Source: Lenisia limosa (lineage: Eukaryota > Protista > Breviatea). From it: a stretch of DNA of 46,498 bases. Below the pieces are notes generated by a model, which saw nothing but the letters and a program-made list of their open reading frames with translations, was not told the DNA's origin and did not search any database. Below, one piece after another: positions 7,420 through 41,631 of the stretch. Within the stretch, counting starts at the first letter, position 1. The number at the start of each line of letters is the position of its first letter. The stretch spans positions 1-46,498 of the forward strand of contig LPNZ01003347.1 of NCBI GenBank assembly GCA_001655205.1, read 5' to 3'. Made by a program: the position numbers and the translations under genes.

Positions 7420-8370
7420 TGAAAAGTCATGGTAAGCTGTTGGTCGTTTGTATTTGTTTTGAGCGAGGATGAATTGTGGTTTTTCCGCACCATTCGCAGA
7501 CCCCCCTAAGTGGAAATTCGTTTCCGTGTGCAGGTTCTGCCTTCCTTAGTCTGAGCTCATGATTTCTTGATCCTTTACTTTTTGTCCTTACTTCACTAAT
7601 ATTTCTAGAACGTAAAAGCAGTGACTGAAGACGTAAATGTCCTGAAAACCTCTTTTATTGTAAGCAAAACGAGATGTTGAGTTAATTATTGAGCGAGGAT
7701 GAATTGTGGTTTTTCCGCACCATTCGCAGACCCCCCTAAGTGGAAATTCGTTTCCGTGTGCAGGTTCTGCCTTCCTTAGTCTGAGCTCATTTGCTTTTAT
7801 GACCTTTTCTCTTTTCTTATGGCTTCTCACCTTATAGCTTTCAACTAGAAGTACCTGGTAATCAGCCCTCAAGCGACGGCATTGAAGCTTTTCAGGTATT
7901 CTTGGCTTCTCTTATGAGCCAAATTTTCTTTTATGAAGATAAACAACCCGCAGCATGATATCTATGATTGCGCACACAACCAAGATCTCTGAAAATTATC
8001 CATCCTTTTCCTTTCTCTCCTTGTGATCAAACACTCATTGTTTTAGGCTTCAGCCAAAATGCAAATGTCAAAACGCACAACACACTTTTGAGGTTAGTTT
8101 ATTACCATTCTGCAAACCCATTTTTGCCGTATGTTGAGCTCTTTTTGCATGAGACTTTCATGATTGCTAAAGTAATTAACTTTCGTTCTACTGAAGGAAA
8201 CAATTGGTCTTGATACTCCAATATCTATTCTTTGGTCTCACCCTCCAGGTTGCTCCGCATTTAGCACCTGTCGTCCTAGTTTGGACCATTCGTTTCAATA
8301 GATTTCTTTTAGTTATTTCTTTTGGAATTGTATTGGTTTGATTATCTGTAATGTTTTCCATTTCCTCCAT
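7420..8370 (-). pseudogene. Degenerate ORF remnant, possibly Mutator/FAR1-like transposon-derived
   Basis: MEEMENIT...RTTGAKCGATWRVRPKNRYWSIK, then a shifted frame with VNYFSNHE (loosely FAR1/WRKY-like C..W..H), and a C-terminal CEWCGKTTIHPRS zinc-knuckle-like motif present twice. Stops and frameshifts lie between the pieces, and no DDE core is seen. Confidence 0.25.
7459..7790. repeat. Perfect ~102-bp direct repeat (7459-7560 and 7689-7790)
   Basis: TTGAGCGAGGATGAATTGTGG...CTGAGCTCAT occurs twice with a period of 230 bp. Confidence 0.95.
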
Positions 8371-29103: not shown

Positions 29104-30470
29104 CTAAGAAAACAACCCAAATTTATCCATACCCATTGTGACCAGACTAAGCTGGATATGCACTTTGCCGCTTGAAACTGTTCGTAGACGAGGGAACCTG
29201 CTGTGTTACCGCGTCTAATAACAGTTTTGTGTTACTAATCATTAACAAAGACAAAAACTGGCTGAAGCAGTCTAAATAATCACCTTGCTATGTTAAATGG
29301 AATATTTCATACGATACTATATTATTATATAATCCACATTCATTGTCGCACAAATCTCGGAAGGTGTCCAAAGTAATGTGAAGAGGAAATGGAAAGAAGA
29401 CTTAAATAAAAAGAAGAGGCTCATCCTTGGACAACAGAAAATAGTTACAATATTAGTCCACAAAGCCTATCAAAAAAAATCACCCGTGATTCCTGATAAA
29501 ATGTGCTGGTACCCTGTAGGTTCGACTGACCTGTCAGCAGGAGAGACGACAAGATCTTCGTTCCGCAACTGTGGATGCCCCCCCAGGAAAAACGCTATAT
29601 AAATTAGCGGATTGATATAAATAGAAATCAAATTGATGATAAAAAGGAGTAAACTGGAGAAAGGTGTGCTTCATAGACAAACAGTTAGGAATAAGCCCGT
29701 ACCCCACCTGAGACCTCCTCCATCAAGGAGCCTTGAGGCCGCCATGTTGGACACTCGAGTTCGTACATTCCCGGCGCCATTGGAACGTGCACCGAACCAT
29801 AGCCGGCTGGGAGGTCAGAGGAGGCCTTCCCATGGTCTAAAATAAAAGGTCTACTCTTGATATTTGCACGATTTATCGAGATATTTGTCTTGTGCTGGCT
29901 GTGAATACAAGCAATACAGCCGCTTTTGTGAATAACAAACACAATATTAAGCAGTACACTTCACAATATAAGCCAGGCCAACCCAGATCGTTACGTCCAT
30001 ACTGGTCCTGCGAAAAGACCTGAACGTAAAACCGAGGCCAGTCGGAGAGCCCCTTTGTCGAGAAATGAACATCCACAGGGTGACTCCAAACTGCGAACTC
30101 GTGGTCCTGTGTGGTCATCACTGCGTTAAAAACTTCAGGGCAAATGATATTTTTCGAGCTTGAAAAAATACTCCTATTTTCTATTTAACCAGTGTAGTAC
30201 ACTTGCTAATACGCTACAAAAAACAATGCAATAAAAGAAAAACAATGGCACCATTACAAACAAATGTAGAAAGTCTCCAAGATTAAAACACCCAAGAAAT
30301 AACCAAACAACACGACGCACCTCAGGCCAGTCCACTTGCGTCTGGCCGCGGTCGTAGCCCTCAATCTTGTCCCAACCGTTACCCGTGACAATGCCCCAAC
30401 GGCAAAAGAGGTTGTTGTTTGAGAAGTCGCTTCCTCCCACAACTTGCCCCACAATGTGAACTTCTGCCAT
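29104..30470 (-). CDS. B9D2: B9 domain-containing protein 2 (ciliary transition zone), 5 exons
   Basis: [123 protein letters not shown]. All introns are GT-AG. Confidence 0.95.
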
Positions 30471-30880
30471 CTTCAAGAAGAATCTGGCTTAGCGCACAGC
30501 AAAGGAGACTATGAGGGGTTTTCACTGATATCAACAACAATTGGCTTCACACAGATCAAGAATAGTATGGCCCTCAGAACAGTTCCTTTCAAGCAATTTT
30601 CCAGCTATTCAATCCTTTTTGTTTTTCTTTCTAAGTCTAATATTATTATAGCACTACCAAAATAGAAAAGGTAGAAGAAAGGGGACCACCAGCGAAAGCG
30701 GCGCCTTTTTAACTTGGGCGACCGCAACCTTGCTTTTCTTACATATTTCGCCTTTCTGCCACTCTTTCATGTGCTCTTTTATTGATAATTATACTATATT
30801 ATTATTTCAATAAACCTGGTGTTTGTACAAGAAGTTGCCCGGAGTTTTGCCGATTTTGAGTTCGCTCTGCTCGCAATGAG

Positions 30881-34486: not shown

Positions 34487-36781
34487 TTAAAGGTTGAAAT
34501 GAATTGATTCAGAAACTAAAGAAATGGAAGAGAAAAGGGACCATGAAACACACAAAATCCAGGCAATGAATCCAATTACTGCCTGAATTGTTTTTTGAGG
34601 GGCTATGACAAACAAGGGGCCAGAGGAAACAGGAGCACTCTGCAAATGGTCAGTTATCTTGCTGAGATAACAATACTCCATAATGATGATACATGATCAT
34701 AGCAGATGTTAGACTACCTGTTATCAATACTTTTCCGGAACCCACAGGTAACAAGTCAAACGACACGCCTCCAACGGACTTCAAGAAAAGCGCAAGATAG
34801 CCAGCAATCAAGGCCGGGCCCAAGTACTGTAATGTCAAACATAAACGCTCCGACAGCCTGACGTCGGATTGGCTTTTAGATTATTTCTTATGCTTCCATA
34901 CCCAACTCAGAGTCTGTAATATCATCTTAACTGATATGTCATCGAGTCAATTTAAATTCTAGCAGAATGAAATAAAATGCATTTAAACAAGATAATAGTG
35001 TTTTCTTCAACACTGACAAACCTGCATTGCAATAATGGGCAGCATAAGTACCAGATTGGCAAGCTAGATGATGATTTCAGATAAAGTACAGCTTATTCCA
35101 TCCAGCGAAAAAAATTGAGAAGAAATTTGTCCACTCACTTTATTGGAGATAGTCTTTGGAGACTCTTCATCTTGTTTCATTTGCTCCAAATGCGATTTAG
35201 CTGAATTCAAATATAACTGCATGAATTCTAAATAAAAACTTGCAACTGAATCTTTAAAACAGAAAGCCGAGAAAGAGCCAGAAGCAACAATGATCCGATA
35301 AAGATCTGAAGGGACTGGAAAGAGTCCAGGCTGAATAAGGGGGAAAAGAATACTGAATTCCAATAAATGAAGCAAAATAAGAATTAATTGGATGAACATA
35401 GACTGCTGAAGCAAGGATGGGTGTCATGAAGTCCAAAAGAGAAACAAGTTTCCTGGTTAAGATTTTGACGCAACTTGGAAAGAGAAACTGTTGAGTCACT
35501 AAGGGACATTTGAAGAAGACGTCCCTGTCTCATGGCAGGAATGAAAGTGAGGGACGAAGTGAAGCAAGCCATAAAGGCCAAAAACACGGGATATAAACTG
35601 ACACCAGAAAACATTGCTGCAAACTCCCTTGAAAAGTAAAAGTGCACGTGTTAATAGTTGATGAGAAAATTTTCATGATGCTATTATATCAAGATCCTTT
35701 GCTAATTATCAAAAGTTACAATCTGAGAAGCATAGAAAAGTGGCAGAAGCAAATATAGTCCATCCATTGTTGATTTAAGGAGGTTACTAGTTAAATGACT
35801 AATATATTCTTCAATAATACAATCAAATACTCTACCATTATGATGAAGCCCTGATACATTCTTCTATAATACAACCAAATACTCTACCATTATGATGAAG
35901 CCCAGCAAACAATAAAGCAGAAGCGCTCTGTTCAGTCTCTTGAAGTGCAAAAGACCGCATCAAAGAGGCTTGAAGTGACGTTGAAAACCCGATCAGCTCT
36001 GCAAGATAAGTAAGAAATTCTTTACTGTAAAGACCCAATAAAGGATTCTTCCATGCTTCAAACTATCTCACCTTGGTCCAAATTGCTTAAATCAAGTAAC
36101 CACAAAGTTAGTAAGGATAAAATACTGGAAAGAAGGAGAATGAGTAGAATGAAAACAGAGCAAAGAAGACTCCAATAAACGCGGTTGCTATAAGGTATAG
36201 TTGAGATTGAGCAAAATGCTTCCAAGCAAAGAACACAGAAAACCTACAATATCAAAGAAAATATGGCTTACAGTGCATGGATAGAAACTGCAAGAGGTAC
36301 ATAGTAACCAGGGTGATTTGGTGTATAAAAGAAAACATTCCACAATTCAGCAATAACAAAACAAATAACCGCTGGTAAGAACCAAATCAAAAACCGTAGC
36401 AACATTCAGTTAAAAGAGTGGAGAAAGTTTGATAGTCATCGAAACGTATCACTGAGTCTTCGTCGAGCTTGAGATAGTCAACAACGACTACTTTGTTACC
36501 TTGACTGTGACAAAATTTTCGTCTTTGAGTTGGCTAGCGCAGTTCTTCTTTTGCTTTAACTGGTGATGTCGACGCTCCTTTCGTGGCAGATTTCTTGTCA
36601 AAAAAAACACAAACTGAGAATTGGAGACTAAGTAGTCTTGCTGCAAAATGCTTTCATGGTTTTTATGCAAAAGGCAAGAAAGATTATTGAGAATTTGTAA
36701 AGAGAGTAGCTGCAGGACCTTTGTTCGATAGAGAACAAAGCATGGCAGAACAATACTCAGGATGGAAGGCGGGATAAGCAT
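34487..36781 (-). CDS. TMEM161: TMEM161-family multi-pass membrane protein
   Basis: FLAFMACFTSSLTFIPAMRQG (cf. FLTFPGLRLA), LLDFMTPILASAVYVHPI, RLSVLKIQLQLYLNSAK (cf. RLAMMRSHLQAYLNLA), MQYLGPALIAGYLALFLKSVGG (cf. LQYLTPLILTLNCTLLLKTLGG), and C-terminal AVIGFIAWILC. Confidence 0.85.
36103..36125 (-). other. Candidate 23-nt GT-TG intron in TMEM161
   Basis: GTATTTTATCCTTACTAACTTTG carries a TACTAAC branch-like motif and an in-frame TAA. A canonical alternative with a 14-nt micro-exon exists but fits family homology less well. Confidence 0.5.
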
Positions 36782-37242
36782 GTTTTCTCCTTCCCTATTG
36801 ATAATAAAACAAGTTCAACTCCCCTACTATCAGTAGACTTTTCTTGAAGAGTTAATTAGAGGGGGGGGTGAAGTGTGCCCCTGTCGCGGCAAGTGGGTAG
36901 GAGGGGGTACTAGAAGAAGAAAAAAAGGGGGAAAGGACAAAAGAGAGAGAGGAAGCAAGTGAAGCAAGCAAGAGCAAAAGGGGGAAAGACTGATCTATGA
37001 TCTATTTGCTATTGGTCACCTCGTTCCAGCCTCGTTCCCCTCCTCTTGTTTCCTTTCTAATTGTTGTTGTGTGCGAGTTGTGTGGAGGTTGTGTGCACGT
37101 GTTACCCAGAAAGCAGGAGCTTCACAGAACGGACCCCCCAGTCGGATAGAGTCAGACGACTGACTTCGTGGGTTGGCTGACAAGTGATAATAGAATAATA
37201 GACAACATATATATCTAATTTGATCTATTCTGGTCATTTATC

Positions 37243-39123
37243 ATGCAGGGTATGAATTTGTATTATTTATTTTTTTGTTCTCTCTTTTCATTTATTGTCT
37301 CTGAAGTAATTCCCAAGTTATCTTATTCTTTTTTGTTTTTGCAAGCAGATTTCTCTTCTCTCATCTCTGTTTTCTTGGGGTAGCACAACTTTATTTTTCT
37401 TTTGGAAAGGACATAAAAAGAAGCAAGAAATTGTAACGCACAAAGCTGAATTCCCAACTCTCTCATTCTCCAGTGTTGAGCAAGATGACAGAAACCATTG
37501 ACGACAACATTTCTGAATCCAGGTTTGCCCAGAGAGCTGACCAATGTGTCTTGTCTGTGTTGTGATTCTTTGAGGGCTCATGGACTGTGGATGATATTTC
37601 TGAGGGAATATATAAGAGGTAGTAGTGCACAGAGATTATATTCAGTTCTTAAAATTACACAATGCAACGTTGTACAGTGTCAGTGATGCTTCCTTTCATG
37701 CAGTTATTGATACTCATTAGTGTTACATCTGAAAATAGGCATTTTATGTCTGTTGTTGAAGCTTTTAGCTTCTATCAGTTTTATGGTGGAAAGTTGATGA
37801 TTTATTAATAATTGTTGTTGGCTTGAAAAGATTAAACACAATCATTCACGGTTAAATGAGCATCAAAAAGAGGCCGTCGCAAAACTTGGTGTTAATGAAA
37901 GACTTCAAAATGTTCGCACCTCAATGTTTGTTGTGATCTTTGCTTATTGTCCTCAGACTAATCAATTCCGACTTTATCAATTTGATTCTTGGAGAAAGTG
38001 GATTTGTTTATCCGTCATATTTGGTTTCAGGTATTAAATACGACCTTCCTACAGAGAAACGTGAGTTCTGTATTTCCCATTTACCGTCCAGCGTTATCAA
38101 AAGACTTTGACAAAGTCTTGACAACTCTCAGACAATTCTGCCGTGATTGGTCGTCGGAAGGCCTGGATGAGCGCAATGAGTCTTATCTGCCGTGTAGGAT
38201 GGGGGGGGGGGACCAAAAAAACCCAAATCTACCATAATGGCGTAATGTTTGGGAGGTTGGGAGGAAGTGTGGGGAAATTATCTTCACCGATTTCCTCAAA
38301 ATTCATACAACAGTGCTCCAACTTCTGGAAAAGTACGTGCCAAGTGACATGCCAGAGAAACCTTCCGTCCTTGTCCCTGGTGCAGGATTGGGGAGACTCG
38401 TGTGGGAAGTTGCAATGAGAGGCTACCATGCTCAAGGTACTTGTTTATGTTCAACCTAGGAAATGAGGTGTCGTACTTCATGTTGTTGGCGTCCAATTTC
38501 ATTTTAAATAACTCTGCTTTTGTCAATGAGTTTCATTTGAGCCCATTTGCTTTGAGTAATCTGAATGTCTTCGCAAATAAGTTTGTGTTTATGCCTAACC
38601 AGCGACAACACTCGGGTCATCCACGTTCCTGACGTTCTCCCAGCCTCAATTCCCGAAGGTGTTCAGTTCTCTATGTGTGCCGGTGAATTCTTGGAAGTGT
38701 ACTCGCATTCTCCCAACTCCTTCAATTGTGTAATGACGTGCTTTTTCTTGGACACGGCTATGGTTGTAGTGGATTACATTGAAACCATATATCAGTTCTT
38801 TCTTTTCACTAACCTGTATCCTCAAGCCTGGTGGTGTATGGTTGAATTTAGGCCCGTTACTCCACCATTTCGCAGACTCCTCAGAAGCAACTGTGGAATT
38901 GACCTGGGAAGAAATTCGAAGCTACAATGAAATGATTGGATTTGAAGTCCTTGTAAGCCAATGAGGGTATGGTGTAATAGTTCAGGAGGAATCAAGGCAG
39001 CCTGCACGATACACATGTAACACAAGGAGTATGATGCGAGTCCACTATGACACTGTTATAATGGCGGCAAGGAAACCCATGGTTTGTTACCATAACCTGT
39101 ATTCATCATCAATAGAAGGGTAA
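37243..39123 (+). CDS. CARNMT1: Carnosine N-methyltransferase (N2227-like) (5' end approximate)
   Basis: [26 protein letters not shown]; [41 protein letters not shown]; [12 protein letters not shown]; [10 protein letters not shown]; [24 protein letters not shown]; [11 protein letters not shown]. Confidence 0.95.
38795..38816 (+). other. 22-nt non-canonical GT-TG intron in CARNMT1
   Basis: GTTCTTTCTTTTCACTAACCTG. Removing it restores [16 protein letters not shown], and no AG gives the right frame. Confidence 0.8.
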
Positions 39124-39206
39124 AGCTCTGTCTCCTCGAGCGTATCCTATTTCACAAATGACGTCTTCATCGCAGAACCCTGTTAGAGACTTGCCATTCC
39201 AATGAA

Positions 39207-41631
39207 CTACTGTAACAAAAGCTTGAGTTCGTCATCGGAAGGTGGCTCCCCAATTTCCACGTTATGGGTGTCGGGCTTCTCTTTTGGCCAGTATTTAACG
39301 TCGTAAACAACAATTGCCTTCTTTCCATTAGCCATATCCTTGGTCACAAAAAGGAAATTGAATTTGTCAATCCAAGCCCAATGAGGTGCTAAAACATGAG
39401 AGTTTGCCTCTCTTACCATGAGGCTGCTTTCTGATTTTCGAAATAGACCTGATTTCTTGGATTAGAGTTTCCTTCAAGCAATGAATTAGCTCAGTTTCAG
39501 AAGAAAAGAACTGGTGAGCGAAATAGAAATAAACGGCCGATTTCTTGAAGAACTTCTTGATAGCAGTGTTAACAGATTCAGAGACAACAACTTCCCTTAT
39601 GCGTCAGGACAATCTAATTCAATCTCAATCTCGACAATAATTCCCAAGACCTTCCCCCTTACTCAATTTCTTCAACAACATCTGTGAGCCAATTTGGGAT
39701 AGTTGCGTTTTCAGCGGAGTCAAACCGTGGTAGATAGGGCAAATAACCAGAAAGAAAAAACCTTAATATCAAGAATGGGGGTTCCATCAACCAAATCAAT
39801 ACCAGAAAGAATGATTGTTTTCCTATCCGCAGAGAATCCTTCAACCTAAAATTGTCATCCCTCAGTCCCACAAAAAGACGGAATATCTCGATACAATCCT
39901 CGTTAAAATTCGATATTGTACAGACCAGTCTATTTCGTTAGGAAGCTCCCGGGGAACCAATCCTTATCATATCTTGAAACATGTGATGTAGTGTGGACCC
40001 CACTTATTCGTTCGAGCGTGTGTGCTTTTTGCCAAGTGAATCCCTAGTCATAGCCATCTCCCCTCAAACCTTCGCAAGAGATAATCCAATGGGGTTCGGC
40101 CTATGCGGAGTTCGAGTTGAGAACATTCCAACCTAAAACAAGTCACATGATAGTTTTTGAAGAAGAAGAATGATAGATGTATTGGTTAACTCAAGAAAAA
40201 GGCAAATAAAAAAAAAAACACATAGTACATATGATATATTATATAGTAATATACGTATAGTATGCCATATCATATAATACTAGTAGTATATACTATATCA
40301 TACAATATCGTATGTATTTATATAATACATATAATATGATATATTATATCTATAGAAATGAGAAATAAAAACAAGGTTGTGTCTGAAAAAAAGATAAAAA
40401 AATGTCGAAAAATTACAACAACTAATATGATGTTCCAAATCTATGTGATTTGACATTCTATCTCAAGAGTTTTACAATTTGACACCGTTTGCCGACCCTT
40501 TTTCCGCCAAGCCGAGGAGGCGCTACCTTCCCTCTTGTTCTTGACGCCTTCGAGGCATCCTAATAAGATAAATGGAAAGCAGCAAAATGCGAAACCCTAC
40601 TTTGGAAATCGATCGTGCAGCTTTGTTCTTATTGTGGTGGAATTCAAAGAGGACCCAGCAGTGTGATGCACCCCAGTCGGCAAAGCATGACGGAGGGCTG
40701 CAGTCTGAAATATCATTCGTTAAAAGAATCCCAGTTCAAACACACCGCAATTATCATTCCTTTATTAGAATGCCCATAAAATGCGCAAAACAGTGACTAA
40801 TCTAATAAAAACTTCATCAACTTCAACACACCATATGGATCCCACCTTGGGCCGACAATGTTGGNNNNNNNNNNNNNNNNNNNNNNNNNNNNNNNNNNNN
40901 NNNNNNNNNNNNNNNNNNNNNNNNNNNNNNAACCCTCGAGGATTCTCAAATGGGCTCTGGAGTGAGGTACAATGTTGCCTTGACGTGGGCAGGCGTTGCA
41001 CTCTCTGAAGACCGACTTCAAATAGCCTGAGGGTGGCGGTGAGTTATTGTAGCTATGTCCATGAATCCAAATAATAGAAAGGCAAAACCTGGAAAAGCCA
41101 AAGGGTTGAGACCTTATTTAAACAGTTCTTACCGATAGGATTGCAAACAAGCTCCCTTTGCTGTTCAGCCGTAACCACAGCAGCTGGAGGATTCTAAAAG
41201 GTGAGGGTCTCAAAATGTTGTATATGTGGTACCCCTGTTGGAACACTTTTTTGGGGTGAAGGGGCTTGTATTTGCGCTTGGCATGAATTGAAAGTGCAAA
41301 ATATTGTGATCATAAAGCACTCTATCAATAATAATGTTTCACCGCTCCATGAGAGTGGTATCGAACAAGGGTCCGCCTACCACTTCTTCGTTTGTTTTTG
41401 GCTTCTTTGTGACAACATCCTCAGTGGGAGCGGTCTGCCTCTTCAGCTCGGACCCCGATCCCCGTTGAGCAGTCGCAAGCCTCAGCAAATCTGCTTCAAA
41501 TTCAGCGGAAAGATTCAGCTCTTTGAAGGAGGAGTCTTCTTCTTTTTTCAAGTTTTCTGTATTAAAATCAAATAAAACAAACCAAGGATATTATAGAGCA
41601 CTCTGGATGGTGCAATCAGATAGTCTTTCAT
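39207..41631 (-). CDS. TRMO: tRNA m6t6A37 methyltransferase TrmO (TsaA/YaeB family)
   Basis: [86 protein letters not shown]; C-terminal LIQEIRS. Start codon less certain. Confidence 0.95.
39740..39761 (-). other. 22-nt non-canonical GT-TG intron in TrmO
   Basis: GTTTTTTCTTTCTGGTTATTTG splits the invariant DIK|PY motif and contains no AG. The unspliced frame reaches TGA. Confidence 0.85.

Follow-up and report, generated by a model that had tools for sequence, protein, structure and literature searches.

We describe a 22-nucleotide (nt) insert that begins with GT and ends with TG at positions 38795–38816 on the forward strand of contig LPNZ01003347.1 of the breviate Lenisia limosa (GenBank assembly GCA_001655205.1). 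The whole 46,498-nt stretch that was analyzed is referred to here as the window. The insert interrupts a CARNMT1-type gene and is probably a spliceosomal micro-intron of that gene, which would be cut precisely at UG. U2-type introns as such are already known; what the analysis supports here is one whose constitutive acceptor would be TG. An earlier, sequence-only reading had proposed a 22-nt GT-TG intron in a gene of this type, and the proposal held: the exons fit their homologues, the GT-TG model obtained the top score among 3,386 models, the gene is otherwise intact, the T of the acceptor is firm in three assemblies, and two more candidates lie within 2 kb.

Reading frame and sequence signals at 38795–38816

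The structure of the host gene was established by tblastn with three homologues and manual modelling, and the resulting models were scored with a hidden Markov model (HMM) of 141 full-length homologues. The coding part of the gene (37662–39123, + strand; Pfam CARME / N2227, PF07942) consists of nine exons and eight introns, with a tentative start codon. When spliced, the model encodes 375 amino acids free of stops and scores 395 bits; the other seven introns, all nine exons and the stop codon are intact, and the predicted product contains a motif of the VLVPGxGxGRL type for binding S-adenosylmethionine (SAM). Two of the exons score 68 and 46 bits on their own against a Pfam cut-off of 27, and exon 38603–38794 matches human CARNMT1 (PDB 5yf0) with an E value of 5e-16. 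By homology the host gene is a member of the carnosine N-methyltransferase family that encodes a predicted enzyme. The window has a G+C content of ~42% and is eukaryotic DNA.

The exons on either side of the insert fit the homologues to one codon, which bears out the earlier claim that removal of the 22 nt restores the frame. The 5′ exon (38603–38794, + strand), which ends with DYIETIY followed by the CA of a split codon, corresponds to residues 221–282 of human CARNMT1 (5yf0) and to Pfam CARME positions 125–188. The 3′ exon (38817–38952, + strand) begins with the T of the split codon and corresponds to residues 284–330 of the human protein and to Pfam CARME positions 190–234. The single residue between the two exons is the one encoded by the split codon CA/T (His), a site that K, R, H, Q or A occupies in homologues, and the intron (+ strand) is in phase 2.

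Two scans of alternative models were performed. Scoring of every deletion of 0–90 nt that starts within 45 nt of the donor (8,191 models) put deletions of 22 nt at the top, with three tied placements (AG..CT, GT..TG and TT..GT), one of which begins with GT. Scoring of every intron of 15–120 nt that starts with GT, GC or AT in 38700–38900 (3,386 models) placed the GT-TG intron 38795–38816 first with 395.3 bits, the next GT-start model being a 19-nt GT-AC intron with 389 bits. Among these 3,386 models, no GT-AG, GC-AG or AT-AC intron came close to the GT-TG score, and no AG acceptor yielded an in-frame product. It had been predicted that the downstream AGs would give stops or the wrong frame, and this was found to be the case: a 32-nt GT-AG intron to 38826 leads to a stop at 290 amino acids (292.8 bits) and a 57-nt GT-AG intron to 38851 to a stop at 310 amino acids (~292 bits). 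Retention of the 22 nt gives 329 amino acids and 291 bits. The frame of the gene survives only with removal of 38795–38816, and the TG is the only productive site.

The AT-start models raise the question of whether the boundaries, or the process itself, could be of another kind. An AT-AC intron of 19 nt (38791–38809) or 25 nt (38789–38813) would keep the frame at 386–388 bits, and the sequence from 38789 begins ATATCA, which is near the U12-type ATATCC. These placements nevertheless score 7–9 bits below GT-TG, alter the protein length relative to all homologues and have no U12-type TCCTTAAC branch box, and a length of 19–25 nt is far below that of any known U12-type intron. The 22 nt might also be kept in the mRNA and skipped in translation, but bypassing of this sort is not known from comparable nuclear genes, and the insert looks like an intron in its features. 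Together, these alternatives are very improbable.

The insert reads GTTCTTTCTTTTCACTAACCTG, and the coordinates and letters reported earlier for it and for the 22-nt GT-AG intron at 38581–38602 are correct. Its 5′ end (38795–38796) is GT, as in U2-type introns. A CTAAC box at 38809–38813 (+ strand), recognized by its letters alone, is branch-point-like and has an A at 38812, which is position 18 of the intron and four bases before its last base. The same CTAAC letters occur at the same place in intron 38581–38602, and both introns have A at positions 17–18 from the 5′ end. The 3′ end departs from the AG of U2-type introns: 38815–38816 is TG, the critical base being the T at 38815. The canonical 22-nt intron, 214 bp upstream, ends CTAACCAG, whereas the GT-TG intron ends CTAACCTG. 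The description of the two as near-twins stood for their length and for their 3′ motif (the last eight bases are CTAACC[A/T]G, differing at −2) and failed for the introns as wholes, which are identical at 14 of 22 positions. As far as the letters tell, the likeness lies in the signals and not in common descent; no duplication is shown.

The insert has the length, the GT start, the T-richness and the CTAAC box of the adjacent canonical micro-introns. By a rough, post-hoc estimate, chance alone would bring together a GT start, a terminal G and a CTAAC box at a distance of four bases from the end in ~1 in 70 cases. The first AG downstream of the TG (38825–38826, + strand) lies 10 nt past it and would shift the frame if used.

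The T at 38815 is present in three assemblies at a depth of about 35–40x. A contig from DNA run X1 (word depth 40) shows zero differences from the window over 35300–40377, and NODE_465 of ENA assembly ERZ3820729 (coverage 38) is 100% identical to the window over 36207–40864. Random error at 38815 is excluded at the consensus level. A single base decides the matter, the three assemblies may share one read set, and assembly contigs drop rare variants and so hide minor alleles; the T could on these grounds be a base-calling or assembly error, or a minor allele, in a genome that truly has a CAG acceptor. The agreement of three assemblers at 35–40x, with no difference over 4.6–5 kb, and the repetition of the T-for-A pattern at other nearby micro-introns make this hardly credible.

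Other introns of the host gene and of TrmO

The remaining introns of the CARNMT1-type gene (all + strand) fall into two groups by their 3′ ends. Six are GT-AG introns in the gene model: intron 2 (37926–37956, 31 nt); intron 3 (38031–38091, 61 nt), which lies in a poorly conserved stretch and has less certain boundaries; intron 4 (38194–38313, 120 nt), which contains a G-run and an A-run; intron 5 (38437–38459), a 23-nt micro-intron with A at positions 17–18; intron 6 (38581–38602), the 22-nt micro-intron discussed above, which reads GTTTGTGTTTATGCCTAACCAG; and intron 8 (38953–38985, 33 nt), in which an earlier AG at intron position 28 is passed over. The G- and A-runs of intron 4 (38200–38230, + strand) begin with 11 G, and one DNA contig diverges just upstream with a loose end at 38193; the tract may be a repeat or a hard-to-sequence stretch.

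Intron 1 is a second GT-TG candidate. In its 22-nt form (37793–37814, + strand) it reads GTTGATGATTTATTAATAATTG, and in a 25-nt form, which extends to 37817 and likewise ends in TG, it reads GTTGATGATTTATTAATAATTG plus TTG. If this intron is not removed, the CARNMT1 frame closes after 48 amino acids. The 25-nt GT-TG version reaches 400 bits and the 22-nt one 395 bits. The strongest GT-AG alternative, with 379 bits, would remove conserved residues, and none of the GT-AG models gets to within 16 bits. In animals, an intron of the same phase lies five residues upstream of this position. An AG is found within ~16 nt of the 37793–37814 candidate, as is also the case for the intron at 38795–38816.

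The third candidate is located in the neighbouring TrmO gene on the opposite strand (39740–39761, − strand). It is 22 nt long, reads GTTTTTTCTTTCTGGTTATTTG, has A at position 18 and lies between TPILDIK and PYLPRFD; in translation, its removal joins LDIK to PYLPRFD. The exon upstream of it corresponds to positions 88–109 of the 116 positions of Pfam TrmO_N and to residues 113–137 of PDB 7btu, and the short piece downstream of it had no match in PDB or Pfam. A 795-nt contig from a polyA RNA run (X2) proves three TrmO introns, of 224, 364 and 41 nt, as GT-AG. The alignment of this contig, the only RNA contig on the gene, stops at the donor: it extends to 39762, where the exon ...GTPILDIK ends, and the next two letters of the contig match neither the genome nor the intron. 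No AG occurs within the TrmO candidate or for 57 nt downstream of it.

When the introns of CARNMT1 and TrmO are counted with one RNA-proved intron that lies farther upstream, three of the five introns of at most 23 nt end in TG, as against none of the eight introns of at least 31 nt (Fisher p = 0.035). All five micro-introns of CARNMT1 and TrmO have an A at position 17 or 18 and end 4–5 nt beyond it. A TTG and an AG that come only 3 nt after a likely branch A are skipped in the 31-nt and 33-nt introns.

A mechanism of the following kind would fit a cut at UG. In the shortest introns (~22–23 nt), the 3′ cut may be placed mainly by geometry, 4–5 bases past a branch A located ~18 bases from the 5′ end; in an intron of 22 nt, the branch would be so near the 3′ end that hardly any play is left, and the position of the cut may thereby be fixed. 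The terminal G would be retained and would pair with the first G of the intron, while U would be accepted in place of A at −2, the base whose usual partner is the branch adenine. Solved structures of post-catalytic spliceosomes show the terminal G paired with the G that opens the intron and the −2 A paired with the branch adenine; mutants in the Prp8 alpha-finger and in Prp22 relax positions −2 and −3 (PMC12262433). We regard it as an evenly balanced proposition that the breviate spliceosome sets the 3′ ends of its shortest introns by a ruler from the branch point or the 5′ end, with only the final G needed, such that UG (and GG) would serve as constitutive, AG-independent acceptors genome-wide, including in housekeeping genes. 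A strict form of the ruler, which puts the cut at the first G that is 4 nt or more past the branch A, was also considered; it fits the five micro-introns and the 31- and 33-nt introns, and was rejected because the RNA-proved 364-nt TrmO intron contradicts it, as may intron 1 if read as 25 nt.

CARNMT1 and TrmO are convergent, and their stop codons are ~83 nt apart (39123–39207), so that the 3′ ends of the two genes must nearly touch or overlap. Within the 364-nt TrmO intron, an AT-rich, TATA-like stretch of low complexity (40240–40390, − strand), in which many X1 contigs break and the summed depth is ~139, is probably a dispersed repeat. The run of 66 N in the window at 40865–40930 is a true gap; it falls within a TrmO intron that the RNA contig also spans, and NODE_465 bridges it with 77 bases.

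RNA evidence and the case against a cut at UG

The RNA run bears on the insert through its content of short words. The X2 index contains 0.56 of the sampled 31-mers of 37800–39200 and 0.63 of those of 38283–39070 (48/76 words). The shares expected with all eight introns removed are 0.58–0.61 for the long query and 0.67 for the short one, and those expected with intron 38795–38816 kept are 0.62–0.65 and 0.74, respectively. For the short query the likelihood ratio is ~6 in favor of full splicing over retention; this is weak evidence, because the share would drop as well if the transcript were only partly covered. Carry-over of DNA would give a share of 1.0, which is excluded. RNA also shows four ordinary introns of 40–360 nt in this genome. 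An 84-nt GT-AG intron at 36188–36271 (− strand) is backed by an RNA contig of 60 nt, made up of exactly 30 bases from each side of the junction; because this is the shape of an assembly-graph bubble, both the spliced and the unspliced form of that intron are probably present in the RNA run.

Several points weigh against a cut at UG, or against its general form. X2 contigs that aligned to the window, under a filter that drops records, fell on neighbouring genes and none on CARNMT1, and no RNA spanning the junction of 38795–38816 was found among them; the 31-mer argument assumes full transcript coverage; and a common set of reads probably underlies all three DNA assemblies. With an AG 10 nt downstream, intron 38795–38816 by itself is no proof that AG can be dispensed with. 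The length of intron 1 may be 25 nt and not 22 nt. The RNA-proved 364-nt TrmO intron skips a TTG located four bases after an A, and the geometric rule is a hypothesis for the shortest introns only, drawn post hoc from five introns. Finally, when an acceptor is mutated from AG to TG in humans, AGs in the vicinity are activated and the TG is never used for splicing (PMC2374985).

The human mutants lend weight to a different account, in which a recent AG-to-TG mutation killed the acceptor of the 22-nt intron, the 22 nt are now kept or the AG at 38825–38826 is used, the frame is shifted and the gene has only recently been disabled or impaired. Canonical knowledge would lead one to expect such an outcome; the canonical intron 214 bp upstream is different by one base at its end, and no spliced RNA of the gene was found among the X2 contigs. 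Even so, the two exons downstream of the insert (91 codons) are open and conserved and add ~100 bits to the HMM score, and the share of RNA words favors full splicing. Two more hits of the same kind would moreover be needed within 2 kb, one at 37793–37814 and one in the conserved DIKPY stretch of TrmO. The presence of these two further GT-TG candidates makes a private mutation unlikely, and a splicing machinery that tolerates TG at such sites is far likelier than three separate, recent losses of an acceptor within 2 kb, all of them in the shortest introns and one in the conserved LDIK/PY stretch of TrmO.

Introns of CARNMT1 were mapped in Trichoplax, Phycomyces, Pocillopora and Branchiostoma. 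The position of the 38795–38816 intron is common to none of these four genes. This is neutral for a cut at UG, because four GT-AG introns of the same gene are also unshared. The 33-nt intron 38953–38985 has a position and phase common to all four, and the 23-nt intron 38437–38459 has the position and phase of an intron in Phycomyces.

Searches of protein and metagenome collections yielded no product of the gene from the organism itself. No intact CARNMT1 protein of this gene was present in the large protein collections searched, which include one of 5.8 billion proteins. In that collection, queries with the nearest homologue, with a mixture of homologue and exons and with a junction profile, as well as an exhaustive search of representatives, returned no CARNMT1 of the organism, the best match being a 65%-identical protein from another transcriptome. 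Look-up of the exact protein of the read-through open reading frame (ORF) gave no record, and the exact junction pattern with a gap of 0–30 nt had no match in metagenome contigs of the Joint Genome Institute (JGI).

An ORF-based census of micro-introns in the window, using inserts of 18–45 nt with a GT start that join long frames and a T-rich frame test, gave no signal even for the AG class and included known false positives; it had no power. In Pfam searches of 30 long ORFs of the window, the matches were limited to a B9 gene, a PSI repeat and a stretch of low complexity. The ciliary B9-domain gene (29700–30500, − strand; Pfam B9-C2) was modelled by hand with GT-AG introns of ~150–190 nt and no micro-introns, which indicates that intron size classes differ between genes. 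Elsewhere in the window, a 5S ribosomal RNA gene (1143–1261, + strand; Rfam RF00001, 73.5 bits, full length) lies amid protein-coding genes. A perfect direct repeat of 102 nt occupies 7459–7560 and 7689–7790, and immediately past it, from 7791 onward, the ENA assembly departs from the window, a sign that the assembly is ambiguous at this place.

Comparison with known introns and significance

TG acceptors have been described in 36 human genes (Szafranski et al. 2007; GNAS and TSPYL2 are named examples of TG-AG tandems), always as alternatives to an AG at most 28 nt away (PMC2374985). The intron at 38795–38816 resembles these TG-AG tandems in being U2-type GT...TG, in the pyrimidine at −3 and in the presence of a downstream AG inside the 28-nt range, here at +10. 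It differs in that TG is never the sole site in the human tandems, whereas here it is the only frame-keeping site of a 22-nt intron, with the AG out of frame, and in that the base after the cut is T and not a purine. The TG could be used as in the human tandems, the AG at +10 recruiting early factors, the TG being chosen at the second step and a frame-shifted AG isoform arising alongside. The distance of that AG, inside the human limit of 28 nt, and the pyrimidine at −3, as in human TG sites (PMC2374985), speak for such an arrangement, as does the AG within ~16 nt of the candidate at 37793–37814. The TrmO candidate, however, is without an AG in the intron or in the 57 nt downstream; a TG as the sole productive site has never been seen in human genes; and with the branch box 4 nt from the TG, the AG at 14 nt from the branch is not obviously required. 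We therefore consider a tandem of the human kind improbable, and a micro-intron cut at UG as its only productive acceptor the better account. No report on the introns of Lenisia or other breviates, and none describing such introns, was found in the literature library searched.

Introns of Paramecium measure ~25 nt. Those of Stentor are 15–16 nt long, with a fixed branch adenine near the 3′ end, and end in AG (PMC9505925). The tiny introns of ciliates share with the insert their extreme shortness, weak signals beyond the GT and a branch A held nearly fixed a few bases from the 3′ end. In the Lenisia micro-introns, a length below ~30 nt and a fixed A (position 17/18 in all five) are found, but the insert lacks the AG end of ciliate introns, and this genome also has ordinary introns of 40–360 nt. 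Introns of Giardia and Trichomonas have a branch point fused to the acceptor (ACTAACACACAG), with an AG end and a box ~7 nt from it. The insert similarly has a CTAAC box that adjoins the 3′ end, branch and acceptor forming one signal, but unlike theirs its end is not AG and its box lies 4 nt, not ~7 nt, away. In yeast Prp8 Q1594A and Prp22 mutants, deviations from YAG at −2/−3 are used while the terminal G is kept (PMC12262433), as would be the case here. Those are laboratory mutants with relaxed proofreading and with growth defects, whereas in Lenisia the condition would be the wild-type state and would apply, so far, only to the shortest introns.

Few rules of eukaryotic gene structure are as firm as the 3′ AG of U2-type introns, and in humans TG functions only as a rare alternative next to an AG. 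Gene-prediction programs that require AG will fragment or overlook many genes of this genome. The ends CTAACCAG and CTAACCTG, occurring in one gene, provide a clean side-by-side pair of acceptors. If the interpretation is true, an organism in which TG is the sole acceptor of many tiny introns would be a natural experiment on the choice of site at the second step of splicing, involving G-G pairing, the contact between position −2 and the branch A, and proofreading by Prp8 and Prp22. Should the ruler hold as well, the AG rule would be a property of intron length and not of the catalytic centre.

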